Origin: Podarcis erhardii
Taxonomy: Eukaryota
Length of the DNA: 64,000 nt
Assembly (NCBI GenBank): GCA_964252035.1
Contig: OZ176207.1
Strand: one strand, 5' to 3'
Shown here piece after piece: positions 2,709 to 49,882 of this stretch. The notes under the pieces were generated by a model, which saw nothing but the letters and a program-made list of their open reading frames with translations, had not been told where the DNA came from and did not search any database. The translations under genes were made by a program, and so were the position numbers. How positions within the stretch are numbered: position 1 is the first letter of the stretch; every line of letters begins with the position of its first letter.

Positions 2709-5138
2709 CGTGCTGTCATTTTCCTTTTCAGAAATTAAATTACCTCCACTGACCATCAAAGAAATGTCAGAGTTGCCATTGCAAAGGAGGTTCTCTGCTA
2801 TTTGGACTGTGGGCTGCAGGAATGTCAGCTCATTCCTCCTGGATTCAGAGGACAAACAGACCTGATAGGAATAAGGCAAAGTTCCGTCTTCATAATTGGG
2901 TGGGAATATGGCACCAGCCTTTGAGTGGGGGTCAGGAATAAAGCACTGAAGGAAAGTGGGGTTCCTTGACCTTCGAAGCTTCATCAGAATGGTCAGAATC
3001 ACCGTCACCAGGAATAGAAAGGAAACCAAGGTCAAGGCCAATACCAAATAAAACTGTAGATCAGACTGATACTCTGAGTCATTTGGTTGGGAGTTCATTT
3101 CCGGAAGAGCCTCCTGGAAGTTCTCAGCAAACACCAGGCTCAACGTTGTGGTGGCTGAGAGAGGAGGATGCCCATTGTCCTTCACCAGGATGACCAGCCT
3201 CTGCTTCACAGCATCTCTCTCAAGTAATGCTCGGACTGTTTCAACCTCTCCGGTGTGGGAGCCAATGCTGAAGAGTGAGGGCTCTGTGGCCTGCAGGAGA
3301 TGGAAGGAGAGCCAGGCATTGTGTCCTGAATCAGAGTCCACGGCCACCACCTTCGTCACCAGATAACCCGACTCAGCTGACCGAGGCACCATCTCAAAGA
3401 AAGGTGAGCCCTCTGTTGATTGTGAGGGGTACAGGATCTGCGGAGCGTTATCATTTCGATCCAAAACACATACTGTCACTGTGGCACTGCTATTGAGTGG
3501 TGGAGAACCTCCATCTTGGGCCTTCACTTGAATCTGAAACTCCCTGAATTGCTCATAGTCAAAGGAGCGTTGGGCATAGATGATCCCAGTCTCAGAGTTA
3601 ATGGAGACATAGGAGAAGAGAGGCAGGTCCTTGATGTTGCTGTTAAGGATGGAGTAAGTGATTCTGGCATTGCGATCCAGATCTGCGTCAGAGGCCTTGA
3701 CGTGGAAAATTGAAGCTCCAGATGGGTTGTTCTCTGGAATGTAGGCAGTGTAGGAAGATTTTTCAAAGTCTGGTGGGTTATCATTGATATCTGAGATCTG
3801 TATAGATATGGTTTTGTGTGTGGAGAGTGGAGGGGTGCCTTTGTCTGTGGCTGTGATTGTAATATTATACTCAGGAGTCCTTTCTCTGTCAAGGGCACCA
3901 TCTAAGAGGAGCTTGAAGTAATTATCCAAAGATGAGACTATAAGGAAAGGTACAAGTTCCTTCAGGTGACAAGTGACTTCTCCATTATCACCAGAATCCC
4001 TGTCCTGAACTTTAATGAGAGCAATCACAGCTCCAGATGTGACATCTTCCGGAACTGGGCTGGACACGGATGTAAGGATCACATCTGGAGCATTGTCATT
4101 CTCATCAAGAACCTCAATCTCCACATTGCAATGTGCCGCCAATCCTCCTCCATCACTTGCCTGAATTATCATCACATAATATTGACTTTCTTCAAAATCA
4201 ACACTTTCTATGAGTGTAACTGTTCCATCTCTGGGATCCAGATGAAATTTCTGCTCGGCTGTTTCTGGGATGTCACTGAAAGTGTAAGTGATCTCAGCAT
4301 ATGACCCTTCATCACTGTCAGATGCTTTGACTTGAAGCACAGAGGTTCCTTTGGGTGCACTCTCCTTCAGGCTCACTTTATAGATTGCCTGGGTGAACAC
4401 AGGGGCATTGTCATTAGCATCAAGAACTGTTACCAATATTTTGGCTGTTCCGGTTTTTGGAGGTTCTCCGCCATCCATGGCTGTAAGGACCATGTGGTGT
4501 GTGTGTTCCTTTTCCCTGTCCAGTTGTTTCAGCAATATTAACTCTGCATATTTGCCACCATCATTGCTGTTTTGAATTTCTAGTTTGAAATATGGAGTTG
4601 AGCTTAATTGATAATTCTGGAGGGAGTTTATTCCAATATCATCATCTTCAGCATTTCCAAGAGCAAATCGAGTTCCTGGCAGAGTAGATTCACTAAATTT
4701 AAGCTCAATATTTTCATTCCGGAAATGTGGGGCATTATCATTGATGTCCTGGATAAAAATATTTACTTGGAAAATATTCAAAGGATTGTGTGCCACAACT
4801 TCTAATTTGAGGACACAAGTGGATGATTTACCACAAATCTCTTCCCGGTCTATCCTCTCATTCACATACAGGTTGCCATTTTGTTCATTCAAATCAAAGA
4901 ATTGCTTTTCTGAAGAAATACCAAGCTTGCGCTTTGACAGCTCTCTGACATCCAACCCCAGATCTTTAACAAGGTTCCCCACAAAGGAGCCCTGCTCTGC
5001 TTCCTCTGGAACTGAATACTGAACCTTCTCAGACACTACCTGGCAGCAGAACACAGAGCAGAATATGAACAGAAACAGTACTTGCCTCCTGGTGATCTTC
5101 CTTGTTCTCTCTGCCTGCTTTACTTCCATCACATCCAT
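2709..5138 (-). CDS. PCDHGB: Protocadherin gamma-B-like variable exon (B1), 810 codons to splice donor
   Basis: ORF 2637..5138: signal peptide RQVLFL, EC1 YSVPEE, Cys-X5-Cys, six cadherin repeats (DxNDNAP, LDRE), TM, gamma-B type tail [13 protein letters not shown]; donor ACG|GTGAGT after 2709 (phase 0). Symbol is subfamily-level only. Confidence 0.95.
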
Positions 5139-5371
5139 TGCATTTCCTGATTTCTTCCTTCTTTCAGTATAGTCTGCAAGGCTCCCAGTACACTAATGTG
5201 AGATAATAGAAATGTTCTTCTTTTCAGCTGATCCTTGGGAAACTGAGAGCTTTCCTTTCTTGAGCAGCTTTTAAAAGAAAAGCTTTTCCTTTCTGCTTCG
5301 CTGATGTGTTAAGAGAGAGAGAGACTGCTCCAAGAGTCTCGGAAATGCTGAGCCATGGCTGCTTCCACGTT

Positions 5372-5410
5372 GTCCAACAGTGACACACTGAGTCCACATG
5401 GGGAACTGTA
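5372..5410 (-). promoter_or_regulatory. Pcdh conserved sequence element (CSE)/CTCF-type site of B1, CACT variant
   Basis: Minus strand TACAG-TTCCCCATGTGG-ACTCAGTGTGTCACTGTTGGAC, about 234 bp upstream of the ATG; matches the position and form of the Pcdh CSE. Confidence 0.75.
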
Positions 5411-7112: not shown

Positions 7113-9178
7113 TAAGCCCATGGCATGCATAGTCCTCACAATGGAGGATCTGCATCACACTTTTTCTTACATTCATGTTGGAGAGGATGGGACAAAATCT
7201 TTTCATTGCAACTTTAATCAACAGCATAGACGATGTGCCCTTAAGATGAATGTTGGCTAAATTCATTGCCCTCTGAAACAATTAACTTGCTGCTGCTCTC
7301 TGCTGCCAACACTATATATATATATAAAATAGGAAAGGTAAAGATCTACCATTGAATATGTTTCCTGTTCTGTATGGAGAGAGCCAACAAGGTTTCCCTA
7401 AGGACCTGGACTAAAACAAGTTGCACTATTTATAAAACAAATTATGTTTCATAACTATTAAAAGTACAATATATTACATTATCTGCAATGTGCCTTGTAT
7501 CCATAGCACAAAAATCTCTACGTGTGCATTATTCTTTTAAATATTTTCTTTTTGTAACAGAAAAAACACTAAAAGCCCAAAACTAACAGATGTGCATTTT
7601 ATTAATGTGATCAAGAGGATTTACCACTTGCATTTACAATAATGAAAAGTAACTACTGTTAGCACTATTTTTGTCTGGTGTTCCAATAATCCCTAAATAA
7701 TTCCCACTTTCTCTTAAACGTCAAACAATTTTGTGGGAATCCAAGCATCCTCCCAGCATACTTTTCATTGTGCAATTCACACATTAGTAGAACTTCAGGA
7801 TAGTCCTTCTATGACATTGTCAGAAATGGTCACGCAAACAACTTCCCCAAATTTCAGCACGTTACCATTCATTGTTTTCCTTACAGGAACAAAAAACAAA
7901 AACCCCACATGCCTCATAAAATGTCCCCCAAATACATCAATTCTTGCCACTGTAGTGTGTTTACAACACCAACCATGAAAGCATATTTTAAATAGAAAAA
8001 TATAAGCGACATGTCACCAAAGAGCACTGGAATCAAAACAGCTTACAGTCATGTGACAGAGGAGTAAAGAAACTTGCAATCACATTTCCAGTGATGCACC
8101 CATTGTAGCAGTGTGGAACTCCCTAGAAGAACACACCTTCGGCTGAAGCTGTTTTCATTCAAATTACGGGGAGAAGGCAACACACGACACCTTCTCTGGG
8201 GTTCAAAATTCTACCCGTACCTTACACTGGAAATCCTATTTAAGTAGAAAATACCCCCCCCCCAAGCCATTTGTGTGTTGCTGCTGTAGTTAAATAGCGG
8301 GTGAAGGTTGCAAATTACAGCGAGCATTATGCAACCAATCTTACAATACAATTGCTTGTAAATTTCTTCCCAGAGTCTCCTTACCATTGAATCTCCTCAT
8401 TTTATCATGCTAAAATATACCAACAGCCAAAATAACTCAGCCAATAAAAGGGTTAAGTAAATTCATTGTTACTTTTTTAAAAAGGTATTGTAGCAATGAG
8501 AATCTCAGTATCAGCTTATTGGTGGGCAGTTGGGTATGTAGTGGAAAGAGGTTACTGGATGAAAGATGGGAATGAACACTTACTTGTCATAGGATACTTG
8601 GCCCTAGTTTTCATGGAGGCAGCATAACTAAGCTTACCAGTAGCAAGGCAGGTGAGGGCTCACATTTATATACTTATTTATTGATACAGGTTTTTTAAAG
8701 AGTCTTAAAAATATGAAATAAAAGCCAAATACAACATACTAAGTTAAAACAATTAAGAATGCATTAAATCAATCTCACAGGAACTCACATGCTGAAGCCT
8801 TGTTCAAAGCGGGAGGAGATGAATACACCTCCACATGAAAATAGGTTGAGCCTAGCCTTCTCCTATACATCTCCCATGCATGATAGTTTTCAATTTGTAG
8901 GGAACTATAGATGTGCAAAAGGTTTTGTGAGCCTCCACCAGCAGTCCAAAATAAGAGACAAAGACTGATCATCTGATGCATCAAGATAAAGATTTGTTGA
9001 AAGAAGATACTTCACAGAAGGATCACATATAAAGTAATAACTAAAAGAAGGCGGGCTGAAAGGAAAAGAAAGAAGACTGACATAGTTCTGAATATAATGA
9101 GAAAGCAGAGGCAGATGGGAAATATATTCTGATATTAACAAAACAAAAAAGCATGTTAATCTAAAATTGTTTGCTCAC

Positions 9179-11581
9179 CTGGACTACGATTAAGCCTTCA
9201 TTGTTCAAGTTTAAATCTTCACCAGGTAGGATTGGATCCTTTGCCTCACAAGCTTCTTTATTGCTCAGAGTATTGGAATAATTTGCCTTTCTAGAGTCTG
9301 TAGTGAGAGAAACCTCCTGGCAGTAGGAGTGCAGAAATGCTCGGACTCCGTCAATCCCCACAAACTGTGAGATAGGAGCACCACTGAAATTCACACTCCC
9401 CGTCTCAAGCAGCTGAGAATTTCTCCATCTGTGCAACCTGACAGCCAGTAACACGAGGAGGAAGATGAAGAACAAGCAGGAGACAAAAGCCACTGCAAGG
9501 ACCAGGTAGAAGGTGAGGTCAGACGGAGGCTCTACAGGAGCTGAGATGCTGCTCAGGTCTGAGAGGATTGCAGGGATGGTGTCAGCCAGCACCACAGTCA
9601 GAGTGGCTGAAGCAGAGAGAGGTGGCTGCCCATTGTCCTTGACTAAAACCACCAGGCTTTGCTTGAGGGCATCTTTCTCCAGAAAGAAGCGGGCTGTCCT
9701 GATCTCTCCCGTGTGGAGCCCCAGAGTGAAGAGCCCTGGCTCGGTGGCCTTGATCAGCTGGTAGGAGAGCCAGGCATTCTGGCCAGAGTCCGCATCCACG
9801 GCCACCACCTTAGTGACCAGGTAGCCTGGCTCAGAGGAGCGAGGGGCCAGCTCTATCCCTGTGGAACCATCAGTGGGAGGGGAGGGGTACAGGATTTGGG
9901 GAGCACTGTCATTCTGGTCCAGGATGAAGAGAGTGACTGAGACGTTAGAGCTGAGTGGTGGAGAACCTCCATCTTGAGCCTTTACACGGAACCGAATGTC
10001 TCGAAACTCTTCATAATCAAAGGAGGTCAGAGCATATATAACCCCTGTCTCAGAGTTAATGGACAGGTAAGAGGAGAGGCGGGAGTCACTTCTTTGGTCA
10101 TCAGTGATGGAATATGTTATTCTGGCATTTTCTTCCCAGTCAAGATCATTTGCTCTTAAAGAAGAGACCATGGCTCCTCTTTGGTTATTCTCAACAAAAT
10201 AGAAAGTATAGTCTGTTTTTTCAAAGAGGGGTGGGTTGTCATTTGTGTCTAAAACATGAAGTGTGATAACTGTGACTGTAGAAAGAGGGGGGACTCCATG
10301 GTCAGTAACAGTGACAGTAATATTGAAGACTGACACCTGTTCCCTGTCAAGGGCACCAACAGTCACCAAACTGTAAAAGTTATCCATGGACTTCTTTAGC
10401 TGGAAAGGGAGGTTGCTAGGGATTGAACATGTGATTTCCCCATTGATTCCTGAATCTCGGTCTTGGACATTTAAAATGGCAATTACCGTTTGGGATGGTG
10501 AACTTTCAAGTATGGTGTTGGTGGCAAAGGTAACTGATAATTGAGGTGCATTGTCATTCAAATCCATAACAGATATCACAATTTTTGATTTGTCACTCAG
10601 GCCTCCTCCATCTTTGGCTTGTATCTCAAATGCATATAAAGATGATTCCTCATAATCAAGATTCCCAATAAGGATGATTTCACCTGTTGTGGAATTTAAT
10701 AGAAATATTTGGGAGTCGCGCTTTGTAATTTCTTGGAAAGAGTATTTAATGTCTCCATTGATTCCTTCATCCATATCAGTCGCTCTCACTGTCAAAAGTG
10801 TGGACCACTTGGGAATATTCTCATTGACACTCACTTCATAGAGAGGTTGGCTGAAAAATGGTGCATTGTCATTTGCATCAAGGACAGCGATGTGGATTTG
10901 TAATGTGCCAGATTTGATAGGATCACCTCCATCAGTAGCTGTGAGAAGCAAATCGTAAGATGATTGTTCCTCTCTGTCCAGTGACTTTTCCAACACAAGT
11001 TCAACAAGTCTGGCACCATTTTCTTTTGTTTGCACATGCAAAGCAAAATTGCTACTGCCTGTGAGTTGATAGGTCTGCACTGAATTTGTCCCCCAATCTG
11101 GATCTTGAGCTTTGGGTAGAGGGATCTGGAATCCAGGTATAGATGCCTCACTGATTTTCAGCTCCTGTTCCCATAGAGGGAAGTGGGGAGCATTATCATT
11201 TATATCCGTAATTTCCACTTCAATTCCATAAAGCTTCAATTTGCTTTCAACAAGAACCTGAAACTTCAACATACATTTCTCTGCCTCTCTGCAGATTTCC
11301 TCTCTATCTATTCTCTCAGATATCTGCAAATGGCCATTGTTGGCATTCAAAGAAAAGTACTGAATCATACCTACAGGAGACACAATGCGGAGTCCATGGT
11401 TTGGGAGCTGCTTGCCATCCATTCCCAGGTCCTTTGCAATATTCCCCACGGAAGAGCCTTTGTGCATCTCTTCTGGAATGGAGTAGTGGATCTGACCAGA
11501 AACTGCCTTCCAATAAAACATCATGAAAAGGCACTGGAAAATTCCCTTTCTGCAATTCCACAGCCTCTGAATTCCTTCCAT
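9179..11581 (-). CDS. PCDHGA: Protocadherin gamma-A-like variable exon (A2), 801 codons
   Basis: ORF 9161..11581: QIHYSIPEE, six EC repeats, TM, gamma-A tail [23 protein letters not shown]; donor CAG|GTGAGC after 9179. Confidence 0.95.
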
Positions 11582-11767
11582 TCTTGCAGCAGGTTAAAGA
11601 CCCTTAGATTTTTGTTCAAATGATACTGTATCCAACTCTTTTCTAAGGAAAATTCACTTCCATTTCTTCTTTACACTGACAAGCAGCTTGTTCCTTCAGA
11701 TATTTTGTGTTTGTGTTTAACGGAAAGGCAACTTCAACTGGGCAGGATTTCACATTTCTTCTCCATT

Positions 11768-11808
11768 CTGGTCAACAGTGACACCCAGAGGATCAAGCCC
11801 AAACTGCA
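11768..11808 (-). promoter_or_regulatory. CSE/CTCF-type site of A2, CACT variant
   Basis: TGCAG-TTTGGGCTTGAT-CCTCTGGGTGTCACTGTTGACCAG, about 187 bp upstream of the ATG. Confidence 0.8.
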
Positions 11809-12181
11809 AAAACTTCAGATATAGCTAGGATAACTATTCTTTTCCCTTAGAATTTACGCACTAAGGATAAATAAGAGTGACGACTTTTGTTGCTGTAATC
11901 AAATTGAAAGGGAGCAGGAAAGACAAGTGTGTTTAGGGTTCCTGCCCTGCCCCATTACTGGAATTTCTGGAATAAATGTTATGGATCTTTCTCAGCAATG
12001 TTTTCTGCTCACTTTTCTCTAGATTTTTTCTTGATGTAGAAACAACACTAGTAAACCACCAGTACATCCTTGTGACCTCTGACACTTCACTCCTCTCAGC
12101 TCCTATTTGTTCATTCACATCTCTACGCTGTTCACCTTCAAACTGAATATTTATTTTTTGGTACATGTTACATAAGCCCTA

Positions 12182-16805: not shown

Positions 16806-19235
16806 CGTGCTGTCATTTTCCTTTTCAGAAATTAAATTGCCTCCACTGACCATCAAAGAAATGTCAGAGTTGCCATTGCAAAGGAGGTTCTCTGCTATTT
16901 GGACTGTGGGCTGCAGGAATGTCAGCTCATTCCTCCTGGATTCAGAGGACAGACAGACCTGGTAGGAATAAGGCAAAGTTCCGTCCTCATAATTGGGTGG
17001 GAATATGGCACCAGCCTTTGAGTGGGGGTCAGGAATAAAGCACTGAAGGAAAGTGGGGTTCCTTGACCTTCGAAGCTTCATCAGAATGGTCAGAATCACC
17101 GTCACCAGGAATAGAAAGGAAACCAAGGTCAAGGCCAATACCAAATAAAACTGTAGATCAGACTGATATTCTGAGTCATTTGGTTGGGAGTTAATTTCTG
17201 GAAGAGCCTCCTGGAAGTTCTCAGCAAACACCAGGCTCAACGTTGTGGTGGCTGAGAGAGGAGGATGCCCATTGTCCTTCACCAGGATGACCAGCCTCTG
17301 CTTCACAGCATCTCTTTCAAGTAATGCTCGGACTGTTTGCACCTCTCCTGTGTGGGAGCCAATGCTGAAGAGTGAGGGCTCTGTGGCCTGCAGGAGATGG
17401 AAGGAGAGCCAGGCATTGTGTCCCGAATCAGAGTCCACGGCCACCACCTTCGTCACCAGATAACCCGACTCAGCTGACCGAGGCACCATCTCAAAGAAAG
17501 GTGAGCCCTCTGTTGATTGTGAGGGGTACAGGATCTGCGGAGCGTTATCATTTCGATCCAAAACACATACTGTCACTGTGGCACTGCTATTGAGTGGTGG
17601 AGAACCTCCATCTTGGGCCTTCACTTGAATCTGAAACTCCCTGAATTGCTCATAGTCAAAGGAGCGTTGGGCATAGATGATCCCAGTCTCAGAGTTAATG
17701 GAGACATAGGAGGAGAGAGGCAGGTCCTTGATGTTGCTGTTAAGGATGGAGTAAGTGATTCTGGCATTGCGATCCAGATCTGGGTCAGAGGCCTTGATGT
17801 GGAAAATGGAAGCTCCAGATGGGTTGTTCTCTGGAATGTAGGCAGTGTAGGAAGATTTTTCAAAGGCTGGTGGGTTATCATTGATATCTGAGATCTGTAT
17901 GGATATGGATTTTTGTGTGGACAGTGGAGGTGTTCCTTTGTCTGTTGCTGTGATTGTAATATTATACTCGGGAGTCATTTCTCCGTCAAGGGCACCATCT
18001 ATGAGGAGCTTGAAATAATTATCCGAAGATGAGACTATCAGGAAAGGTACAAGTTCCTTCAGGTGACAGGTGACTTCTCCATTATCACCAGAATCCCTGT
18101 CCTGAACTTTAATGAGAGCAATCACAGCTCCAGATGTGACATCTTCCGGAACTGGGCTGGACACGGATGTAAGGATCACATCTGGAGCATTGTCATTCTC
18201 ATCAAGAACCTCAATTTCTACTTTGCAATGTGCTGCCAATCCTCCTCCATCACTTGCCTGAATTATCATCACATAATATTGACTTTCTTCAAAATCAACA
18301 CTTTCTATGAGTGCAATTGTTCCATCTCTGGGATCCAGATGAAACTTCTGCTTGGCTGTTTTTGGGATGTCACTGAAAGTATAAGTGATCTCAGCATATG
18401 ACCCTTCATCACTGTCAGATGCTTTGACTTGAAGCACAGAGGTTCCTTTGGGTGCACTCTCCTTCAGGCTCACTTTATAGATTGTCTGGCTGAAAGCAGG
18501 GACATTGTCATTAATATCAATAACTGCAACCAATATTTTGGCTGTTCCGGTTTTTGGAGGTTCTCCACCATCCATGGCTGTAAGGACCATGTTATGCATT
18601 TGTTCCTTTTCCCTGTCCAGTTGTTTCTGCAATATTAATTCTGCATATTTGCCACCATCATTGCCAGCTTGAATTTCTAATTTGAAATATGGAGTTGAGC
18701 TCAATTGATAGTTCTGGAGGGAGTTTATTCCGATATCATCATCTTCAGCATTTCCAAGAGCAAATCGAGTTCCCAGCAGAGTAGACTCACTCAATTTAAG
18801 CTCAATATTTTCATTCTGGAAATGTGGGGCATTATCATTGATGTCCTGGATAAAAATATTTACGTGGAAAATATTCAAAGGATTGTGTGCCACAACTTCT
18901 AATTTGAGGACACAAGTGGATGATTTACCACAAATCTCTTCCCGGTCTATCCTCTCATTCACATACAGGTTGCCATTTTGTTCATTCAGATCAAAGAATT
19001 GCTTTTCTGAAGAAATACCAAGCTTGCGCTTTGACAGCTCTCTGAGATCCAACCCCAGATCTTTAGCAAGGTCCCCCACAAAGGAGCCCTGCTCTGCTTC
19101 CTCTGGAACTGAATACTGAACCTTCTCAGACACTACCTGGCAGCAGAACACAGACCAGAATATGAACAGAAACAGTACTTGCCTCTTGGTGATCTTCCTT
19201 GTTCTCTCTGCCTGCTTTAATTCCATCACATCCAT
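16806..19235 (-). CDS. PCDHGB: Protocadherin gamma-B-like variable exon (B3), 810 codons
   Basis: ORF 16737..19235, close paralog of B1; donor ACG|GTGAGT after 16806. Confidence 0.95.
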
Positions 19236-21981: not shown

Positions 21982-22313
21982 ACAATTTAGCACTGTCTCC
22001 AGTCAAATGTGCTATGCTGTGGTCCTAGATCATCACCCTAAGTCAGCATGAAGATAGGCATCTAGATAATTCAGACTGAGGCTTCCACAATTTGCAGTTT
22101 TCTCCCTCAACAACTGCTGAAAAATCCATCCCATTAGGTTGCTCTGTAGCAGTAGCAGCTCAGTATACTCCCTACCTACTTCCCTGGTGACATGGCCTGA
22201 ATTGTCTGGGGTGCCAGTTTGATAACACCCACTGTTTACAATTAAACTCTCAAACAAGTGATAACACACCTAATTCCCTTAAAAAAGAAAAAAAAGAATG
22301 CAATATAACTCAC

Positions 22314-24743
22314 CGTGCTGTCATTTTCCTTTTCAGAAATTAAATTGCCTCCACTGACCATCAAAGAAATGTCAGAGTTGCCATTGCAAAGGAGGTTCTC
22401 TGCTATTTGGACTGTGGGCTGCAGGAATGTCAGCTCATTCCTCCTGGATTCAGAGGACAGACAGACCTGGTAGGAATAAGGCAAAGTTCCGTCCTCATAA
22501 TTGGGTGGGAATATGGCGCCAGCCTTTGAGTGGGGGTCAGGAATAAAGCACTGAAGGAAAGTGGGCTTTCTTGACCTTCGAAGCTTCATCAGAATGGTCA
22601 GAATCACCGTCACCAGGAACAGAAAGGAAACCAAGGTCAAGGCCAATACCAAATAAAACTGTAGATCAGACTGATACTCTGAGTCATTTGGTTGGGAGTT
22701 CATTTCTGGAAGAGCCTCCTGGAAGTTCTCAGCAAACACCAGGCTCAAAGTTGTGGTGGCTGAGAGAGGAGGATGCCCATTGTCCTTCACCAGGATGACC
22801 AGCCTCTGCTTCACAGCATCTCTCTCAAGTAATGCTCGGACTGTTTGCACCTCTCCTGTGTGGGAGCCAATGCTGAAGAGTGAGGGCTCTGTGGCCTGCA
22901 GGAGATGGAAGGAGAGCCAGGCATTGTGTCCCGAATCAGAGTCCACGGCCACCACCTTCGTCACCAGATAACCCAACTCAGCTGACCGAGGCACCATCTC
23001 AAAGAAAGGTGAGCCCTCTGTTGATTGTGAGGGGTACAGGATCTGCGGAGCGTTATCATTTCGATCCAAAACACATACTGTCACTGTGGCACTGCTATTG
23101 AGTGGTGGAGAACCTCCATCTTGGGCCTTCACTTGAATCTGAAACTCCCTGAATTGCTCATAGTCAAAGGAGCGTTGGGCATAGATGATCCCAGTCTCAG
23201 AGTTAATGGAGACATAGGAGGAGAGAGGCAGGTCCTTGATGTTGCTGTTAAGGATGGAGTAAATGATTCTGGCATTGCGATCCAGATCTGGGTCTGAGGC
23301 CTTGATGTGGAAAATTGAAGCTCCAGATGGGTTGTTCTCTGGAATGTAGGCAGTGTAGGAAGATTTTTCAAAGGCTGGTGGGTTATCATTGATATCTGAG
23401 ATCTGTATTGATATGGATTTGTGTGTGGAGAGTGGAGGGGTGCCTTTGTCTGTTGCTGTGATTGTAATATTATACTCGGGAGTCCTTTCTCTGTCAAGAG
23501 CACCATCTATGAGGAGCTTGAAGTAATTACTTGAAGATGATACTATCAGGAAAGGTACAAGTTCCTTCAGGTGACAGGTGACTTCTCCATTATCCCCAGA
23601 ATCCCTGTCCTGAACTTTAATGAGAGCAATCACAGCTCCAGATGTGACATCTTCTGGAACTGGGCTGGACACGGATGTAAGGATCACATCTGGAGCATTG
23701 TCATTCTCATCAAGAACCTCAATTTCCACATTGCAATGTGCCACCAATCCTCCTCCATCACTTGCCTGAATTATCATCACATATTTTTGTCTGTCCTCAA
23801 AATCAACACTTTCTATGAGTGTGATTGTTCCATCTCTGGGATCCAGATGAAACTTCTGCTTGGCTGTTTTTGGGATGTCACTGAAAGTGTAAGTGATCTC
23901 AGCATTTGACCCTTCATCGCTGTCAGATGCTTTGACTTGAAGCACAGAGGTTCCTTTGGGTGCACTCTCCTTCAGGCTCACTTTATAGATTGTTTGGGTG
24001 AAAACAGGGGCATTGTCATTAGTATCAATAACTGCAACCAATATTTTGGCTGTTCCGGTTTTTGGAGGTTCTCCACCATCCATGGCTGTAAGGACCATGT
24101 TATGCATCTGTTCCTTTTCCCTGTCCAATTGTTTCTGCAATATTAATTCTGCATATTTGCCACCATCATTGCCAGCTTGAATTTCTAGTTTGAAATATGG
24201 AGTTGAGCTCAATTGATAGTTCTGGAGGGAGTTTATTCCGATATCATCATCTTCAGCATTTCCAAGAGCAAATCGAGTTCCCGGCAGAGTAGACTCACTC
24301 AATTTAAGCTCAATATTTTCATTCTGGAAATGTGGAGCATTGTCATTAATGTCCTGAATTAAAATATTTACGTGGAAAATATTCAAAGGATTGTGTGCCA
24401 CAACTTCTAATTCGAGGACACAAGTGGATGATTCCCCACAAATCTCTTCCCGGTCTATCCTCTCATTCACATACAGGTTGCCATTTTGTTCATTCAGATC
24501 AAAGAATTGCTTTTCTGAAGAAATACCAAGCTTGCGCTTTGACAGCTCTCTGAGATCCAACCCCAGATCCTTAGCAAGGTTCCCCACAAAGGAGCCCTGC
24601 TCTGCTTCCTCTGGAACTGAATATTGAACTTGCTCAGACCCCACCTGGCAGAAGAACACAGACCAGAATATGAACAGAAACAGTACTTGCCTCCTGATGA
24701 TCTTCCTTGTTTTCTCTACCTGCTTTATTTCCATAACATCCAT
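22314..24743 (-). CDS. PCDHGB: Protocadherin gamma-B-like variable exon (B4), 810 codons
   Basis: ORF 22242..24743; donor ACG|GTGAGT after 22314. Confidence 0.95.
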
Positions 24744-38188: not shown

Positions 38189-38374
38189 CCTTGCAGCAGG
38201 TTAAAGACCCTTAGATTCTGGTTCAAAAGATGCTGTATCCAACTCTTCTCTAAGGAAAATGCACTTCCATTTCTTCTTTGCACTGAAAAGCAGCTTGCTC
38301 CTTCAGATATTTTGTGCTTGTGTTTAACAGAAAGGCAACTTCGATTGGGCAGGATTTCTCATTTCTCCTCCGTT

Positions 38375-38415
38375 CTGGTGAACAGTGACACCCAGAGGAT
38401 CAAGCCCAAAGTGCA
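38375..38415 (-). promoter_or_regulatory. CSE/CTCF-type site of A6, CACT variant
   Basis: TGCAC-TTTGGGCTTGAT-CCTCTGGGTGTCACTGTTCACCAG, about 187 bp upstream of the ATG. Confidence 0.8.
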
Positions 38416-40226: not shown

Positions 40227-40229
<3 letters not shown>

Positions 40230-40277: not shown

Positions 40278-40281
<4 letters not shown>

Positions 40282-41050: not shown

Positions 41051-41451
41051 TATTTCTTCTTGTAAATTTCTTAAAGGACAGAATGTAAAAATAACTACAT
41101 ATTCAATTGCATTTGTACTGCAAAGATAAGAAAAGAAAAACAATTAGCATTCTCTCCACTCAGCCATGCTGTACCACTCTGTGATCTTAGCACGACACTG
41201 AGTTACCATGCACCTAGACAATTCTGACAGAGCCTCCACCATACTGCTATGCTGCCCCTCAATAGCTGCTGGAAAGTCCAATAAGCTTGCTCTACAGCAG
41301 TAACAGCTCAGTACAACTCCCTACCTACTTCCCTGATGACGTGGTCTGAATTCTCTGGGATGCAAGTTTGATAACATCCACTATTTACAATTAAACTCTC
41401 AAACAAGTGGTAACACAAAATTCCCTATAAGGAACATGAAATATAACTCAC

Positions 41452-43881
41452 CGTGCTGTCATTTTCCTTTTCAGAAATTAAATTGCCTCCACTGACCATC
41501 AAAGAAATGTCAGAGTTGCCATTGCAAAGGATGTTCTCTGCTATTTGGACTGTGGGCTGCAGGAATGTCAGCTCATTCCTCCTAGATTCAGAGGACAGAC
41601 AGACCTGGTAGGAATAAGGCAAAGTTCCGTCCTCATAATTGGGTGGGAATATGGCACCAGCCTTTGAATGGGGGTCAGGAATAAAGCACTGAAGGAAAGT
41701 GGGGTTCCTTGACCTTCGAAGCTTCGTCAGAATGGTCAGTATCACCGTAACCAGGAACAGAAAGGACACCAAGGTCAAGGCCAATACCAAATAAAACTGT
41801 AGATCAGACTGATACTCTGAGTCATTTGGTTGGGAGTTCATTTCCGGAAGAGCCTCCTGGAAGTTCTCAGCAAACACCAGGCTCAAAGTTGTGGTGGCTG
41901 AGAGAGGAGGATGCCCATTGTCCTTCACCAGGATGACCAGCCTCTGCTTCACTGCATCTCTCTCAAGTAATGCTCGGACTGTTTGCACCTCTCCTGTGTG
42001 GGAGCCAATGCTGAAGAGTGAGGGCTCTGTGGCCTGCAGGAGATGGAAGGAGAGCCAGGCATTGTGTCCCGAATCAGAGTCCACAGCCACCACCTTCGTC
42101 ACCAGATAACCCGACTCAGCTGACCGAGGCACCATCTCAAAGAAAGGTGAGCCCTCTGTTGATTGTGAGGGGTACAGGATCTGCGGAGCGTTATCATTTC
42201 GATCCAAAACACATACTGTCACTGTGGCACTGCTATTGAGTGGTGGAGAACCTCCATCTTGGGCCTTCACTTGAATCTGAAACTCCCTGAATTGCTCATA
42301 GTCAAAGGAGCGTTGGGCATAGATGATCCCAGTCTCAGAGTTAATGGAGACATAGGAGGAGAGAGGCAGATCCTTGATGTTGCTGTTAAGGATGGAGTAA
42401 GTGATTCTGGCATTGCGATCCAGATCTGGGTCAGAGGCCTTGATGTGGAAAATTGAAGCTCCAGATGGGTTGTTCTCTGGAACGTAGGCAGTGTAGGAAG
42501 ATGTTTCAAAGGCTGGCGGGTTATCATTGATATCTGAGATCTGTATGGATATGGTTTTGTATGTGGAGAATGGAGGGGTGCCTTTGTCTGTGGCTGTGAT
42601 TGTAATATTATACTCGGGAGTCCTTTCTCTGTCAAGGGCACCATCTATGAGGAGCTTGAAATAATTATCCGAAGATGAGACTATCAAGAAAGGTACAAGT
42701 TCCTTCAGGTGACAGGTGACTTCTCCGTTATCCCCAGAATCCCTGTCCTGAACTTTAATGAGAGCAATCACAGCTCCAGATGTGACATCTTCCGGAACTG
42801 GGCTGGACACGGATGTAAGGATCACATCTGGAGCATTGTCATTCTCATCAAGAACCTCAATCTCCACATTGCAATGTGCCGCCAAGCCTTCTCCATCACT
42901 TGCCTTAATTATCATCAGATATTTTTGTCTGTCCTCAAAATCAACACTTTCTATGAGTGTAATTGTTCCATCTCTGGGATCCAGGTGAAACTTCTGCTTG
43001 GCTGTTTTTGGGATGTCACTGAAAGTGTAAGTGATCTCAGCATTGGACCCTTCATCACTGTCAGATGCTTTGACTTGAAGCACAGGGGTTCCTTTGGGTG
43101 CACTCTCCTTCAGGCTCACCTTATAGATTGTCTGGGTGAAAACAGGGGCATTGTCATTAGCATCAATAACTGTTACCAATATTTTGACTGTTCCGGTTTT
43201 TGGAGGTTCTCCACCATCCATGGCTGTAAGGACCATGTGGTGCATCTGTTCCTTTTCCCTGTCTAGTTGTTTCTGCAATATTAATTCTGCATATTTGCCA
43301 CCATCATTGCCAGCTTGAATTTCTAGTTTGAAATATGGAGTTGAGCTCAACTGATAATTCTGGAGGGAGTTTATTCCGATATCATCATCTTCAGCATTTC
43401 CAAGAGCAAATCGTGTTCCCAACAGAGTAGACTCACTCACTTTAAGCTCAATATTTTCATTCTGGAAATGTGGGGCATTGTCATTAATGTCCTGGATAAA
43501 AATATTTACGTGGAAAATATTCAAAGGATTGTGTGCCACAACTTCCAATTTGAGGACACAAGTAGATGATTCCCCACAAATCTCTTCCCGGTCTATCCTC
43601 TCATTCACATACAGGTTGCCATTTTGTTCATTCAAATCAAAGAATTGCTTTTCTGAAGAAATACCAAGCTTGCGCTTTGACAGCTCTCTGACATCCAACC
43701 CCAGATCTTTAGCAAGGTTCCCCACAAAGGAGCCCTGCTCTGCTTCCTCTGGAACTGAATACTGAACCTTCTCAGACCCCACCTGGCAGAAGAACACAGA
43801 CCAGAATATGAACAGAAACAGTACTTGCCTCCTGATGATCTTCCTTGTTCTCTCTGCCTGCCTTATTTCCACCACATCCAT
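41452..43881 (-). CDS. PCDHGB: Protocadherin gamma-B-like variable exon (B7), 810 codons
   Basis: ORF 41425..43881; donor ACG|GTGAGT after 41452. Confidence 0.95.
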
Positions 43882-44112
43882 TGTTGTTTCTGATTTCCTC
43901 CTTCTTTCACTTCACTTTTCAAGACTCCCAGTACATTTAAGTGAGATAGTACCAATACTGTTCTTTTGAGCTGATTCTTGGGAAACTGAGAGCTTTCCTT
44001 TCTTGAGCAGCTTTTAAAATAAAAGCTTTTCCTTTCTGCTCAGCTGAAGTCTTAAGAGAGTATGATTGCTCCAAGAGTCTCAGAAATGCTGAGCCATGGC
44101 TGCTCCCACGTT

Positions 44113-44151
44113 GTCCAACAGTGACACTCTGAGTCCACACGGGGAACTGCT
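44113..44151 (-). promoter_or_regulatory. CSE/CTCF-type site of B7, CACT variant
   Basis: AGCAG-TTCCCCGTGTGG-ACTCAGAGTGTCACTGTTGGAC, about 232 bp upstream of the ATG. Confidence 0.75.
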
Positions 44152-45646
44152 TTTACTATTTCTAGAATTCTACATGGAATTTTGTCTCTTAAGTAAGTAA
44201 TTGTTTGTAATACAAGTTCACCTTTAAATGCAATCTGAAACAAATTTCTTCTCCATCACTTGTGCTTCCCAGTCCGTCACCATTCAGCATCATTGCTTTA
44301 TTTTATTCCTTTAAAAAGAAGTGGGAAAAAGACCAAGAAAACCCATAGGAATAGTAGAGATGGGATGCCTGTTGGTGAGGAGGGCTCATCAGATACAGAT
44401 AGTTTGTTTCCAGAGGCTTCTAAAGAAATTGTGGTCTTCCAGAGTGTAATTCCTCGTCAGGGTACACATGGTTTGTCAATGTCTCTTTTACTGGATCAGG
44501 AGGCAGAGGGAAATACACTTGGCATGCTCTCTGGCAGGAAATTCCAGTTCTGTGCATACTCAGGAACATCATCTCTGGTTCAAGGTTAGATAGGACTCTC
44601 CTACCTCTGCCCACTGACAGTTACCACCAGCACCCCACACTTTTTCAAGGGTGATTTTATTTTTACTTGATAAAGGGAAGAAATGGCAGGGAGGTTTAGC
44701 TAATGGTACTGGTGAAACCCATTTTATGCTTAAAATTCATTCAAAGAAAACTGGGTCCTCGCTGAATTAAAGTGATTAAAAAAGATGGGAGAGCTTATAT
44801 TTAAAATCTTCTCATAGGACCTGGACTAAAGCTAGCTGCACTCTTTATAAAAGAGACAACATGTTATACATTATTATGTTATTTGCTATCTGTCTTTCAT
44901 CCAGTTTAAACATAGCATTAATATCTCTATACTTTTGCATAATTCCATTTAAAAAGTTTCTGTAAAGGAATAAAATACTGAAAGACCAAACTAACCAATG
45001 TACATTTCATTAATGTGATCAAAATATTTTACCACATGTATTTACAATAATGTAATGCAACTATTTCAAGCACCATTTTTTCCCAAGTATTCCCAATATT
45101 AAATCATTTCCAGTTTCTCTTTAACCGTCATACAATTTTGTGTGAATCAAAGCATTCCCACCCCACCCGCTCCAATGCAGTTTTGATTCTGCAATGAACG
45201 TACTTCCAGGACATTTTCACAAATGGTCACCCCTACAATATCTTCAAAGTTCAGCCCTTACCAGCTACAGCTGTGTCAATAACTTGGCACAAACCATATA
45301 ATGTTGCTTGGGAACATCTCTCTAACCAAGGACAGTTTTCTTGTGAGTTTCTTAATAGGGTCAGAAGCACATCCCACAAATAAGTGTTTTCTGGCTTGGG
45401 ATGTTTGGACATTGTCAAGCACTCTTCTTCTGACACCACAGACACATATATTTTCTGGGATTCAAAATTCTACCCACACCTTATTTTGAAAATCACATTG
45501 GGGTAGAAACACCCCCCCAAAAAAGTTAGTGTGTTGCTGTTTTTTTCTGACATAGGGTGAAGGTTCCAAGTTATAAGGAGTATAATGCAATCAATCTTAC
45601 ATTCGATTGCTTGCATTTTTAATTTGCTTTAACTTGTATTAATCTA

Positions 45647-45886
45647 CAGTGGTACCTTGGGTTACATACGCTTCAGGTTACATACGTTTCAGGTTACAGA
45701 CTGCTAACCCAGAAATAGTACCTCGGGTTAAGAACTTTGCTTCAGGATGAGAATAAAAATTGTGCTCTGGCGGCATGGCAGCAGCGGGAAGCACCATTAG
45801 CTAAAGTAGTGCTTCAGGTTAAGAACAGTTTCAGGTTAAGAACGGACCTCCAGAATTAATTAAGTACTTAACCCGAGGTACCACTG
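45647..45886. mobile_element. Tc1/mariner MITE, family 2 (inverted copy)
   Basis: TIRs, TA TSD; empty site AATCTATTCTG near 21220. Confidence 0.85.
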
Positions 45887-46024
45887 TATTCTGTTGTGAT
45901 TTTAACTTTCTGTGTGCTTTAAATTATGGTTGTCATTTTTAAAATATTATTTTTATCCATTTTTAATAATATAAAAGTTTAACAATGTAGAACATTTATA
46001 TACTCTCAATCTAAAAAATACAAA

Positions 46025-46184
46025 ACAAAAAATTCCTTCCAGTAGCACCTTAAAGACCAACTAAGTTAGTTCTAGGTATGAGCTTACGTGAACTAACTTA
46101 GAACTAACTTAGTTGGTCTTTAAGGTGCTACTGGAAGGAATTTTTTGTTTTGACTATGGCAGACCAACACGGCTACCTATCTGT
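46025..46184. mobile_element. Penelope-like retroelement terminal-repeat fragment with inversion (perfect hairpin)
   Basis: 54-bp perfect inverted repeat 46021-46074/46099-46152; 16-bp TSD ATCTAAAAAATACAAA (46009, 46185); empty site near 21345. Family assignment is from recalled similarity to reptile Penelope terminal repeats. Confidence 0.65.
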
Positions 46185-46269
46185 ATCTAAAAAATACAAA
46201 TATACAGATTTCCATTGTTAAAACTGGACAAATCTCCATCAGTTATAAATTATAACTGTCCCAAAAATA

Positions 46270-46568
46270 CAGTGGTGCCCCACAAGACGAATGCCTTGCA
46301 AGACGAAAAACTCGCTAGACGAAAGGGTTTTCCATTTTTCGAGGTGCTTCACAAGACGAATTTCCCTATGGGCTTGCTTTGCAAGACGAAAACGTCTTGC
46401 GAGTCTTGCGAGTTTTTTCCCCTTTTTCCCCCTTTTTCTAAGCCGCTAATAGCCGCTAATAGCCGCTAATACCGCTAATCCGCTAAAGGCCGTGCTTCGC
46501 AAGATGAAAAAACCGCTAGACGAAGAGACTCGCGGAACGAATTATTTTCGTCTTGTGAGGCACCACTG
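46270..46568. mobile_element. Tc1/mariner MITE, family 1 (third copy, inverted)
   Basis: TIRs, TA TSD; empty site CCCAAAAATAATTAAG at about 1803. Confidence 0.88.
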
Positions 46569-47087
46569 TAATTAAGAAAGGGAGACTTTTGCAGATCCCA
46601 TACCCATCTCGGCTTTTACATGGCTTTAGGGCAAGATGTAAATTCCTCAGCTCTCAAGTCACTTAACCCCCATCGGAGTTCCTAGGAGCTGACTGCTTCT
46701 TGGTCTCTTGACAACAGAAAACAGCCTTTTCAAAGCACCAGGGATTAATCTCTCATTCACTCTTTTCCCAAAAATGAATATGGGAGCCAAGAGACTTATG
46801 TCTGGCTATCATCAATCACCATGTAATTATCCCTGCTGGCAGACTGTCAACAAAATATGTTCAATCCTCTATTTCCTTCCCCATAACACATAAAAAACTC
46901 TCCACAAACTTCCTAATATTTAGTTTGATAATAAGGAGAATTTTGCCAATAACTAAAAAATTTGCAAACTTCTTAAAGCATATACTATGTAGGATGTTTT
47001 TGTGTTTGTTCTTGCATATACTGTATCTTCTTAAAGAGAGAACATTAAAATAGCTACATATTCAAATTTAGTCATGCTGCAAAGAAA

Positions 47088-47128
<41 letters not shown>

Positions 47129-47452
47129 AAACAATTTAGCACTGTCTCCACTCAAACATACTATACTATGGTCCCAGATCATCACCCTAAGTCAGCATGA
47201 AGATAGGCATCTGGATAATTCAGACTGAGGCTTCCATAATTTGCAGTTTTCTCCCTCAACAACAGCTGAAAAATCCATCCCATTAGGTTGCTCTGCAGCA
47301 GTAGCAGCTCAGTATTACTCTCTACCTACCTTCCTGATAACATGGCATGAATTGTCTGGAGTGCCAGTTTGATAACATCCACTGTTTACAAATAAACTCT
47401 CAAACAAGTGATAACACCAAATTCCCTATAAGGAACATAAAATATAACTCAC

Positions 47453-49882
47453 CATGCTGTCATCTTCCTTTTCAGAAATTAAATTACCTCCACTGACCAT
47501 CAAAGAAATGTCAGAGTTGCCATTGCAAAGTATGTTCTCTGCTATTTGGACAGTGGGCTGCAGGAATGTCAGCTCATTCCTCCTGGATTCAGAGGACAAA
47601 CAGACCTGGTAGGAATAAGGCAAAGTTCCGTCCTCATAATTGGGTGGGAATATGGCACCAGCCTTTGAATGGGGGTCAGGAATAAAGCACTGAAGGAAAG
47701 TGGGGTTCCTTGACCTTCGAAGCTTCATCAGAATGGTCAGTATCACCGTAACCAGGAACAGAAAGGACACCAAGGTCAAGGCCAATACCAAATAAAACTG
47801 TAGATCAGACTGATACTCTGAGTCATTTGGTTGGGAGTTCATTTCCGGAAGAGCCTCCTGGAAGTTCTCAGCAAACACCAGGCTCAAAGTTGTGGTGGCT
47901 GAGAGAGGAGGATGCCCATTGTCCTTCACCAGGATGACCAGCCTCTGCTTCACTGCATCTCTCTCAAGTAATGCTCGGACTGTTTGCACCTCTCCTGTGT
48001 GGGAGCCAATGCTGAAGAGTGAGGGCTCTGTGGCCTGCAGGAGATGGAAGGAGAGCCAGGCATTGTGTCCTGAATCAGAGTCCACGGCCACCACCTTCGT
48101 CACCAGATAACCCGACTCAGCTGACCGAGGCACCATCTCAAAGAAAGGTGAGCCCTCTGTTGATTGTGAGGGGTACAGGATCTGCGGAACGTTATCATTT
48201 TGATCCAAAACACATACCGTCACTGTGGCACTGCTATTGAGTGGTGGAGAACCTCCATCTTGGGCCTTCACTTGAATCTGAAACTCCCTGAATTGCTCAT
48301 AGTCAAAGGAGCGTTGGGCATAGATGATCCCAGTCTCAGAGTTAATGGAGACATAGGAGGAGAGAGGCAGATCCTTGATGTTGCTGTTAAGGATGGAGTA
48401 AATGATTCTGGCATTGCGATCCAGATCTGGGTCAGAGGCCTTGACGTGGAAAATTGAAGCTCCAGATGGGTTGTTCTCTGGAACGTAGGCAGTGTAGGAA
48501 GATTTTTCAAAGGCTGGTGGGTTATCATTGATATCTGAGATCTGTATGGATATGGATTTGTGTGTGGAGAGTGGAGGGGTGCCTTTGTCTGTTGCTGTGA
48601 TTGTAATATTATACTCGGGAGTCCTTTCTCTGTCAAGGGCACCATCTATGAGGAGCTTGAAATAATTATCCGAAGATGAGACTATCAGGAAAGGTACAAG
48701 TTCCTTCAGGTGACAGGTGACTTCTCCGTTATCCCCAGAATCCCTGTCCTGAACTTTAATGAGAGCAATCACAGCTCCAGATGTGACATCTTCCGGAATT
48801 AGGCTGGACACGGATGTAAGGATCACATCTGGAGCATTGTCATTCTCATCAAGAACCTCAATCTCCACATTGCAATGTGCTGCCAATCCTCCTCCATCAC
48901 TTGCCTGAATTATCATCACATATTTTTGTCTATCCTCAAAATCAACACTTTCTATAAGTGTAATTGTTCCGTCTCTGGGATCCAGATGAAACTTCTGCTC
49001 AGCTGTTTTTGGGATGTCACTGAAAGTGTAAGTGATCTCAGCATTGGACCCTTCGTCACTGTCAGATGCTTTGACTTGAAGCACAGAGGTTCCTTTGGGT
49101 GCACTCTCCTTCAGGCTCACTTTATAGATTGTCTGGGTGAAAACAGGGGCATTGTCATTAATATCAACAACTGTTACCAATATTTTGGCTGTTCCGGTTT
49201 TTGGAGGTTCTCCACCATCCATGGCTGTAAGGACCATGTGGTGCATGTGTTCTTTTTCCCTGTCCAGTTGTTTCTGCAATATTAATTCTGCATATTTTCC
49301 GCCATCATTGCTGTTTTGAATTTCTAGTTTGAAATATGGAGTTGAGCTCAACTGATAATTCTGGAGGGAGTTTATTCCGATATCATCATCTTCAGCATTT
49401 CCAAGAGCAAATCGAGTTCCCGGCAGAGTAGATTCACTAAATTTAAGCTCAATATTTTCATTCCGGAAATGTGGAGCATTGTCATTAGTATCCTGAATAA
49501 AAATATTTACGTGGAAAATATTCAAAGGATTGTGTGCTACAACTTCTAGTTTTACGACACAAGTAGATGATTCCCCACAAATCTCTTCCCGGTCTATCCT
49601 CTCATTCACATACAGGTTGCCATTTTGTTCATTCAGATCAAAGAATTGCTTTTCTGAAGAAATACCAAGCTTGCGCTTTGACAGCTCTCTGACATCCAAC
49701 CCCAGATCCTTAGCAAGGTTCCCCACAAAGGAGCCCTGCTCTGCTTCCTCTGGAACTGAATACTGAACCTTCTCAGACCCCACCTGGCAGCAGAACACAG
49801 ACCAGAATATGAACAGAAACAGTACTTGCCTCCTGATGATCTTCCTTGTTCTCTCTGCCTGCTTTACTTCCATCACATCCAT
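47453..49882 (-). CDS. PCDHGB: Protocadherin gamma-B-like variable exon (B8), 810 codons
   Basis: ORF 47426..49882; donor ATG|GTGAGT after 47453. Confidence 0.95.

Follow-up and report, generated by a model that had tools for sequence, protein, structure and literature searches.

The window analysed here, a stretch of 64,000 nucleotides (nt) from contig OZ176207.1, contains 10 protocadherin variable-exon frames in its list of open reading frames (ORFs), all of them on the minus strand and arranged in tandem. Three types of exon were present among the 10 ORFs: five gamma-B-like, three gamma-A-like and two of a third type. The five gamma-B-like exons, and in particular the second and third of their extracellular cadherin (EC) repeats, are the subject of this report. 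They were named by ORF start as 2637, 16737, 22242, 41425 and 47426. An earlier reading made from the letters alone (the sequence-only reading) had called them B1, B3, B4, B7 and B8; these labels are ORF ranks 1, 3, 4, 7 and 8 along the window, with no orthology implied. The reading frames were intact in 5/5 gamma-B-like exons, the copies lie 5-6 kb apart, and the encoded proteins are approximately 95% identical to each other. In each exon, the coding part is 2430 nt long, from the ATG to the splice donor ACG/GTGAGT. The exons are listed below with their type, in which the first letter gives the state of EC2 and the second that of EC3.

47453..49882, minus strand: exon 47426 (B8, type ab), first copy of the slot-1 doublet; ORF, Pfam match, PDB match and donor site
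41452..43881, minus strand: exon 41425 (B7, type bb), second copy of the slot-1 doublet
22314..24743, minus strand: exon 22242 (B4, type bb), first of the two slot-2 copies; its type is the likely source of the EC2 tract in exon 16737
16806..19235, minus strand: exon 16737 (B3, type ba), second of the two slot-2 copies; a mosaic whose segments are in part 2637-like and in part 22242-like
2709..5138, minus strand: exon 2637 (B1, type aa); the Podarcis raffonei protein P0008 has the identical state at every marker
2637-5138, 16737-19235, 22242-24743, 41425-43881 and 47426-49882, minus strand: the five gamma-B-like ORFs

A Pfam search with a gamma-B-like exon yielded Cadherin_2, five Cadherin domains and Cadherin_C_2. 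The top solved relative in a PDB search was mouse gamma-B4 (6E6B, E 9e-234), followed by lower matches to gamma-B2 (8e-179), gamma-A9 (2e-168) and alpha7 (9e-149). E41 and the K338 equivalent, a pair used as a gamma-B-specific EC1:EC4 criterion (PMC5106212), were present in all five gamma-B-like exons and absent from the A-like exons; the R340 equivalent was Q in 5/5. The nearest database proteins came from Podarcis raffonei, P. lilfordi, P. muralis and Zootoca vivipara at 94-97% identity, none of them identical, and these lacertid relatives are annotated as gamma-B4-, -B5- or -B6-like in the source records. The RefSeq models of the Podarcis and Zootoca relatives are isoforms of 941-946 amino acids with a Cadherin_tail, and the constant exons lie outside the window. 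The domain content and the splice donor support the assignment of the five exons as clustered protocadherin variable exons. The best structural match to 6E6B and the E41/K338-equivalent pair support, at the subfamily level, the gamma-B label given to them in the sequence-only reading.

EC2 and EC3 marker states and tests for recombination

Residues are given in mature numbering (ORF residue minus 36), which equals the numbering of gamma-B2 and gamma-B3 through EC1-4. The a-type of EC2 (FRNE, KFSE, IQNSND, KEH) was found in exons 2637 and 47426, and the b-type (FQNE, KL/VSE, IQAGND, KEQ) in exons 16737, 22242 and 41425, the marker residues being R/Q104, F/L/V112, NS/AG154-155 and H/Q176. For EC3, the a-type (GSY, FEESQYY) was found in exons 2637 and 16737 and the b-type (GSN, FEDRQKY) in exons 22242, 41425 and 47426, with marker residues N/Y244 and DR.K/ES.Y at 281-284. 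The four EC2 x EC3 combinations claimed by the sequence-only reading were all present, and its peptide markers were correct in all five exons. The DNA blocks quoted with them were located, with ATTGCTGTTTTG at 4563 and 49307, ATTGCCAGCTTG at 18660, 24168 and 43306, and CATAATATTGACTTTC at 4175 and 18272; the 16-mer CATATTTTTGTCTGTC, however, matched exactly at 23780 only: in the remaining two b copies, nt 951 is different but the encoded peptide is unchanged. The patches that carry the argument are as follows.

4568..4571, minus strand: patch in the EC2 beta4-beta5 loop, residues 154/155 (NS, as against AG in b), with 4 adjacent base differences
49312-49315, 43311-43314, 24173-24176 and 18665-18668, minus strand: the 154/155 patch in the other exons
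4179..4191, minus strand: EC3 patch, residues 281/282/284 (ES.Y, as against DR.K in b), following closely on the DFE calcium motif and differing at 5 bases over 13 nt
18276-18288, 23784-23796, 42922-42934 and 48923-48935, minus strand: the 281-284 patch in the other exons
4254..4256, minus strand: codon 259 (E or K) in the EC3 Phe-X10-Phe loop; site 883, pattern abbba
4719-4721, minus strand: codon 104 (R or Q), the partner of 259, in exon 2637

The position E/K259 (nt 883) lies in EC3 but sorted with the EC2 grouping, against the EC3 grouping. The two a-type copies of EC2, in exons 47426 and 2637, were separated by a synonymous divergence (dS) of 0.152 across EC2, with sharing limited to patches at nt 419-450, 568-571 and 636. 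Given that divergence, the shared parts are short patches and not domain-wide haplotypes.

The five-exon alignment contained 183 variable sites, 63 of which were informative, and 51% of the pairs of informative sites were incompatible. The pairwise homoplasy index (PHI) gave permutation p values of 0.0006-0.012, with incompatibility between neighbouring sites below that of shuffled sites, and the Hudson-Kaplan Rm indicated a minimum of 27 recombination events. On the best single tree, 36/63 informative sites were homoplastic. Simulation on that tree (500 runs for each setting) yielded on average 14.5 and at most 26 homoplastic sites at a gamma shape of 0.02, and on average 8.9 and at most 21 at a gamma shape of 0.5.

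The tree ((47426,41425),22242,(16737,2637)), which tracks the physical order of the exons and is referred to as the backbone tree, was favoured by the whole exon, EC3, EC5-6 and the transmembrane/cytoplasmic part. EC1 did not reject it (difference in log likelihood, delta lnL, 1.3), and three trees tied in EC4 (delta lnL 1.1). EC2 gave the tree ((47426,2637),41425,(22242,16737)) and rejected the backbone tree (delta lnL 22.7; approximately unbiased (AU) test 0.0011), whereas EC3 rejected the EC2 tree (delta lnL 16.6, AU 0.027). The per-domain trees, which the sequence-only reading had proposed as a check, thus rejected each other reciprocally; no single tree fits both EC2 and EC3, and the recombination reading therefore stands. 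The synonymous distance between exons 16737 and 2637 was 0.016 in EC1 and 0.188 in EC2, and the EC2 dS between exons 22242 and 16737 was 0.045, compared with 0.12-0.19 for the other pairs. By domain, dS was 0.11-0.15 in EC1-4, 0.025 in EC5 and 0.047 in EC6.

Exchange tracts, flanks and the Podarcis comparison

Segments in which an exon changes its nearest relative were located within three of the five exons, and a spacer separates the two copies at slot 1.

18495..18817, minus strand: EC2-sized exchange tract of exon 16737 (nt 419-741), 22242-like at 23/24 discriminating sites
48881..49464, minus strand: EC2-EC3 block of exon 47426 (nt 419-1002), like the Podarcis slot-1 orthologue 27:5
43252..43554, minus strand: segment of exon 41425 (nt 328-630), like 16737 over the neighbour 47426 at 19:5; permutation p 0.016
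43882..47452, minus strand: spacer between the slot-1 copies, absent from the Podarcis slot-1 loci

With exons 22242 and 2637 as references, exon 16737 was 2637-like over nt 9-408 and again from nt 750. The tract between these segments had a best-segment likelihood ratio of 13.2 (permutation p 0.002), and the remainder of the exon split 31:44. The tract (nt 419-741) corresponds approximately to EC2 (nt 412-738), and both of its ends fall within the DxNDNAPxF linkers flanking EC2. By this segment comparison, the ba exon combines an aa-like backbone with an EC2 from 22242, its bb neighbour. The 5' switch of exon 47426, between nt 373 and 419, agrees in position with the 5' end of this tract, which, with few events, may be a coincidence. 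Outside its EC2-EC3 block, exon 47426 resembled its neighbour 41425 (16:42; permutation p 0.002, sliding comparison), and the segment of exon 41425 at 43252..43554 ran on into a slot-2-type promoter flank. Across the cases, the tract permutation p was 0.002-0.024.

The flanks were mosaic as well. The upstream flank of exon 41425 is of the slot-2 type found upstream of 22242 and 16737, and on its downstream side it matched the Podarcis slot-1 orthologues. Downstream of 47426, the sequence matched the corresponding flank of 22242, and the downstream flank of 16737 was nearest to that of 2637. Within the spacer, the part by 47426 was homologous to the downstream flank of 22242 and the part by 41425 to the upstream flanks of 22242 and 16737. 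From these similarities, it looks as if the inner part of a slot-2 doublet had been copied into a single slot-1 exon.

Orthologous DNA was compared from two Podarcis genomes, those of P. raffonei and P. lilfordi (loci L001-L004). At slots 1 and 2, the window had 2+2 gamma-B-like exons, P. lilfordi 1+2 and P. raffonei 1+1. Each single Podarcis exon shared its 5' flank with the first of the two window copies and its 3' flank with the second. The change in copy number and the hybrid flanks indicate unequal exchange between tandem copies since the lineages separated. The positional orthologue of 22242 was the P. raffonei exon at L003 17225-19681, and exon 41425 had no counterpart at slot 1 in P. 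raffonei or P. lilfordi. The second slot-2 copy of P. lilfordi aligned with window positions 41209-46024 at 94.2% over 4.8 kb.

The marker states recurred in more combinations (R104 with AG, Q104 with NS, and Y244 with DR.K) among 20 lacertid proteins from Podarcis, Zootoca and the window. The aa and ba marker sets were found exactly in P. raffonei, and the ab set nearly so in P. lilfordi and P. muralis; the sets shared with P. raffonei indicate that the patches and some of their combinations predate the species splits. The window paralogs differed from Podarcis proteins at 22-27 positions and from each other at 30-46, with the family tree unresolved. Goodman et al. (2016) expect specificity-determining residues to vary among isoforms but to be kept in the orthologues of any one isoform. 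By that measure the aa and ba marker sets are kept between the window and P. raffonei, but putative slot-1 orthologues differed at 176 and 244, and slot-2 orthologues at 154/155. On these comparisons, only exon 41425 looks young, that is, lineage-specific.

The claim of the sequence-only reading that paralogs recombine, by conversion and/or unequal crossover, and so reassort EC2 against EC3 was borne out by PHI, homoplasy, the AU test, the tracts and the flanks. Two of its further terms needed narrowing. It had described the paralogs as young, which fits exon 41425 but not the marker states or the aa and ba sets, which are shared with P. raffonei, nor the closeness of the paralogs to Podarcis proteins. 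It had also described the exchanged units as recognition modules; one tract is bounded by EC2, but the markers within EC2 separate in the 20 lacertid sequences, and the units are sub-domain patches.

The trans interface, binding and rival explanations

The interface was mapped from published text, molecular-dynamics contacts and coupling lists. In molecular dynamics of gamma-B3, N155 contacts T286 in EC3 of the partner in trans (bioRxiv 10.1101/493106). The parts of the PMC5001838 supplement that were covered give couplings for 154-286, 155-286, 155-288 and 155-302, for 259 with 152, and for the start of the EC2 A-strand with the Phe-X10-Phe loop (105-253, 108-254). This EC3 loop has been described as a gamma specificity element that is diversified in gamma isoforms (Nicoludis et al. 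2016, PMC5001838). Residues 282 and 284 extend along one strand the alternating pattern 286/288/290, positions that show coupling to EC2 in the same parts of that supplement, and from this pattern 282 and 284 probably face the interface as well. Of the remaining markers, 112 pairs with 122 inside the domain, is probably in the core and is assigned as non-interface; 244 is the Asn of the DxDxGxN calcium motif and likewise non-interface; and for 176, no EC2-EC3 coupling was found in the covered parts of the PMC5001838 list. The placement of the shuffling at the trans-recognition interface is supported in part: residues 154/155 and 259, and probably 282/284 and 104, map to published contacts or couplings, and 112, 176 and 244 do not. 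It is plausible from this mapping that about half of the EC2/EC3 markers are candidate interface residues. The published specificity pairs 111/294 and 125/253 were invariant among the five copies, so that any discrimination must use other positions.

Other changes were observed near these positions. A Tyr replaces the conserved Asn of the EC3 DxDxGxN calcium motif in exons 2637 (4299-4301) and 16737 (18396-18398), and the GSY-type Tyr also occurs in several Podarcis proteins. Two private charge changes were observed: G295E in exon 41425 (42889-42891), which adjoins the equivalent of gamma-B7 294, and K256E in exon 2637 (4263-4265), within the Phe-X10-Phe loop.

Positions 104 and 259 were completely associated, as R104/E259 or Q104/K259 (r2 = 1), across the 20 lacertid proteins, which represent four described species and the window, although the markers between them were reassorted and the two positions lie in different mosaic segments of exon 16737. 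On this pattern, 104/259 may be a trans charge pair held by selection. The pair 104-259 was not found in two parts of the PMC5001838 coupling list. The linkage may also reflect history, since residue 68 in EC1 tracks the EC3 patch too without facing EC3: E/K68 (ORF residue 104) followed the 281-284 patch with r2 0.81 in 20 sequences, and EC1 pairs with EC4.

Consequences for binding were considered by analogy with mouse isoforms. The beta6 and beta8 isoforms are 92% identical in EC1-4 and separated by five interface residues; single changes between them leave the parental binding in place, double and triple changes are intermediate, and a complete switch takes all five (Goodman et al. 2022, PMC8901172). 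According to the summary in bioRxiv 10.1101/493106, a chimera built from isoforms that share more than 85% identity no longer binds its parent. By this analogy, aa and bb, which differ at approximately seven candidate interface positions, may well be distinct in specificity, and pairs one patch apart, such as aa and ab, may cross-bind. That reassortment creates new recognition codes or shifts homophilic preference is plausible on the same grounds. A stronger proposal, which we regard as unlikely at present, is that the array is a natural combinatorial library in which a few old two-state patches on opposed EC2 and EC3 surfaces are re-dealt by tracts that tend to end in the linkers, with selection keeping only the self-compatible sets. 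If it were true, the R104/E259 and Q104/K259 states would be the signature of that filter, the trans contact acting as a charge-swap specificity switch.

The explanation that we favour from the sequence comparisons, with a probability of roughly 0.8, is that the tandem gamma-B-like exons exchange sequence by non-allelic homologous recombination, the EC2 x EC3 combinations being one outcome. On this view, the window is part of the protocadherin-gamma cluster of a lacertid lizard, with five intact gamma-B-like exons, each having a conserved putative promoter block. Unequal crossover alters copy number and yields hybrids that are 5' from one copy and 3' from another, and gene-conversion tracts of approximately 0.3-0.6 kb overwrite internal segments. 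The 3' half (EC5, EC6 and the transmembrane part) is kept nearly uniform, EC1-EC4 stay diverged, and a small set of old two-state EC2-EC3 patches is dealt out in differing combinations. The ab exon 47426 retains the EC2-EC3 of its orthologue, with the remainder homogenised with its bb neighbour. Several of the patches would face each other across the antiparallel EC2:EC3 contact, and their reassortment would shift the preference in homophilic binding.

Several observations weigh against this explanation or against its link to recognition. A GENECONV-style search for long identical fragments between pairs of exons gave none that was significant (best 96 nt, global p 0.085), so that recent long conversions are not the main signal and most exchanges are old or short; from which donor and in which direction any one of them went is uncertain. 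Support in EC2 for grouping 47426 with 2637 came almost wholly from nonsynonymous patch sites, and this grouping could represent retained ancestral states or selection rather than recent transfer. Both PHI and the AU test count each base of a multi-base patch as an independent site. The phase of the markers rests on the assembly and on similar combinations in the assemblies of other species. Finally, all four pairings of the two patches that are probably in contact (NS/AG with DR.K/ES.Y) occurred in intact genes, and the patches could therefore be free of mutual constraint.

The last of these points belongs to an alternative that we consider a serious possibility, held somewhat below even odds, namely that the combinations are a neutral by-product of tandem-array recombination, that the patches leave homophilic specificity unchanged, and that the isoforms are largely redundant or are separated by other residues. 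The ratio of nonsynonymous to synonymous divergence (dN/dS) was below 1 in every ectodomain and 0.26 in EC2 and EC3, types such as aa and ab differ at one patch only, and markers 112, 176 and 244 are non-interface as far as the covered parts of the coupling list go, all of which agrees with neutrality, as does the retention of parental binding by single changes between mouse beta6 and beta8 and the need for five for a full switch (PMC8901172). The distribution of change fits it less well: dN was highest in EC2 (0.0385) and EC3 (0.0347), compared with 0.005-0.022 elsewhere, and the homogenisation that erases differences in EC5-EC6 halts at EC2-EC3 in exon 47426. The patch states moreover persist across Podarcis, Zootoca and the window species, R104/E259 and Q104/K259 remain perfectly paired amid shuffled markers, and several patches lie at trans contacts published in the sources covered.

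Two further alternatives would remove recombination from the account. Chimeric assembly of near-identical tandem copies, which could have produced false combinations or doublets, is suggested by copies approximately 95% identical and 5-6 kb apart, and public reads over the window (20 runs from 8 studies) consisted of contigs of 60-630 bases and one raw-read run of 12 reads, none of which spans the EC2 and EC3 markers. We nevertheless regard it as very unlikely, given that aa and ba are exact in P. raffonei and ab nearly so in P. lilfordi and P. muralis in separate assemblies, that the mosaic segments run into unique flanks matching orthologous Podarcis flanks, that 5/5 reading frames are intact, and that the doublet copies differ by 4-5% with distinct flanks and are not duplicated haplotypes. 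The idea that mutations recurred or converged at a small number of selected positions, with one tree throughout, is still less probable and close to refuted. Most sites joining 47426 with 2637 in EC2 are indeed nonsynonymous, and the single-tree fit pushed the gamma shape to its lower bound of 0.02, which would require a few sites to be hypermutable; even at that shape, however, simulation reached at most 26 homoplastic sites against the 36 observed. The patches are multi-base blocks (4 adjacent differences; 5 within 13 nt) identical between copies, incompatibility is clustered along the sequence (PHI), and synonymous sites and non-coding flanks switch their nearest relative in the same way. 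The sequence-only reading had judged recurrent point mutation unlikely, and the homoplasy count and the multi-base patches agree with that judgement.

Neighbouring features and known systems

The other features of the window comprise the blocks upstream of the gamma-B-like exons and the remaining variable exons.

50108..50124, minus strand: putative promoter block GTGTCACTGTTGGACAA, approximately 230 nt upstream of the ATG; copies at 44111, 24973, 19462 and 5370 (17 nt each)
Starts at 9161, 27523 and 35756, minus strand: gamma-A-like exons
54971 and 62551 (the latter partial), minus strand: third-type exons

The block GTGTCACTGTTGGACAA was invariant in the five copies and in three Podarcis orthologues, and it is similar to the conserved sequence element known from protocadherin promoters. 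When the upstream regions of the gamma-B-like exons were searched strictly for the A-type element, none was found, and alignment then revealed this diverged conserved block. Its core is CACT, as against CGCT in GGTGTCGCTGTTCACCAAT, which sits upstream of exons 27523 and 54971; the versions of the element at exons 9161 and 35756 have CACT with 3-4 mismatches.

At the 3' ends, a T-rich run of variable length follows the donor in three copies (2637-2708, 16737-16805 and 22242-22313). The frames of 2637, 16737 and 22242 continue 22-23 codons beyond the donor, whereas the slot-1 copies start the intron differently. The intron start thus splits the five exons 2 against 3, the same split as in most of the exon 3' half.

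The P. raffonei A-like exon at the 9161 position (L003 24209-26852) matched both window 8168-12181 (94.0%) and window 35760-38424 (94.5%), the A-like exons compared in that match being 9161-11581 and 35756-38188. Donors of the multi-base patches were sought among the A-like and Z-type exons of the window. The A-like exons share EES in the protein but use different Ser codons, and were rejected as the template.

Clustered protocadherins confer individual surface identity on neurons. In the usual account of new isoform specificities, exons duplicate and then acquire point mutations, and gene conversion acts as a homogeniser that spares EC2-EC3. Noonan and colleagues reportedly described gene conversion and unequal crossover in the clustered protocadherin arrays of vertebrates in 2004 (Genome Res 14:354, as cited in PMC2764143 and PMC4978886). 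Such arrays have since been studied in anole (Jiang et al. 2009, PMC2764143) and in Xenopus (Etlioglu et al. 2016, PMC4978886). Interparalog conversion and unequal crossover in protocadherin clusters are therefore already established, and the mechanism is not new. Like the vertebrate arrays, the window contains tandem variable exons, each with its own putative promoter, and as in the two published clusters (PMC2764143, PMC4978886) dS is low in EC5-EC6 and higher in EC1-EC4, here ranging six-fold from 0.025 to 0.148. The lineage-specific duplication of a gamma-b group in a lizard also recalls the anole (PMC2764143). In contrast to the anole report, in which little conversion was found (PMC2764143), an EC2-bounded tract and patch reassortment inside EC2-EC3 were observed here, and, unlike in the vertebrate arrays described, copy number has changed between congeneric or near-congeneric species. 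What is new is the action inside EC2-EC3, a region described as spared in the papers covered, although similar tracts may be present in older work. The locus is of value in that recombination inside EC2-EC3 of intact, very similar exons can be traced to tracts, and the patch states persist across lacertids.

The mammalian gamma-B dimers used for comparison were gamma-B4 (6E6B), gamma-B2 (5T9T), gamma-B7 (5SZO) and gamma-B3 (5K8R) (PMC5106212, PMC5001838). Like these, the lizard proteins have six cadherin repeats, with EC1-4 aligning gap-free from end to end with gamma-B2 and gamma-B3, and they share the E41 and K338-equivalent pair and the EC3 Phe-X10-Phe loop. In the lizard copies, variable residues map to the EC2 beta4-beta5 loop and, within EC3, to the Phe-X10-Phe loop and the beta6 strand, all of which are treated as interface elements in the two papers (PMC5106212, PMC5001838). 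The lizard proteins differ from mammalian gamma-B in having no one-to-one orthology with B1-B8, in the Q at the R340 equivalent and in the invariance of 111/294 and 125/253 among the lizard copies.

Domain and residue swaps between close isoforms were reportedly engineered by Rubinstein and colleagues in 2015. In close-isoform swaps with parents 85-92% identical, exchange of EC2/EC3 segments or of a few interface residues changes the binding partner (bioRxiv 10.1101/493106, PMC5106212, PMC8901172). Those swaps are laboratory constructs with measured binding, whereas the lizard swaps are natural, have parents approximately 95% identical and are known from sequence alone. The five isoforms, with approximately seven candidate interface positions, thereby provide a natural chimera set that bears on how many changes, and which sets of them, make a new homophilic code.

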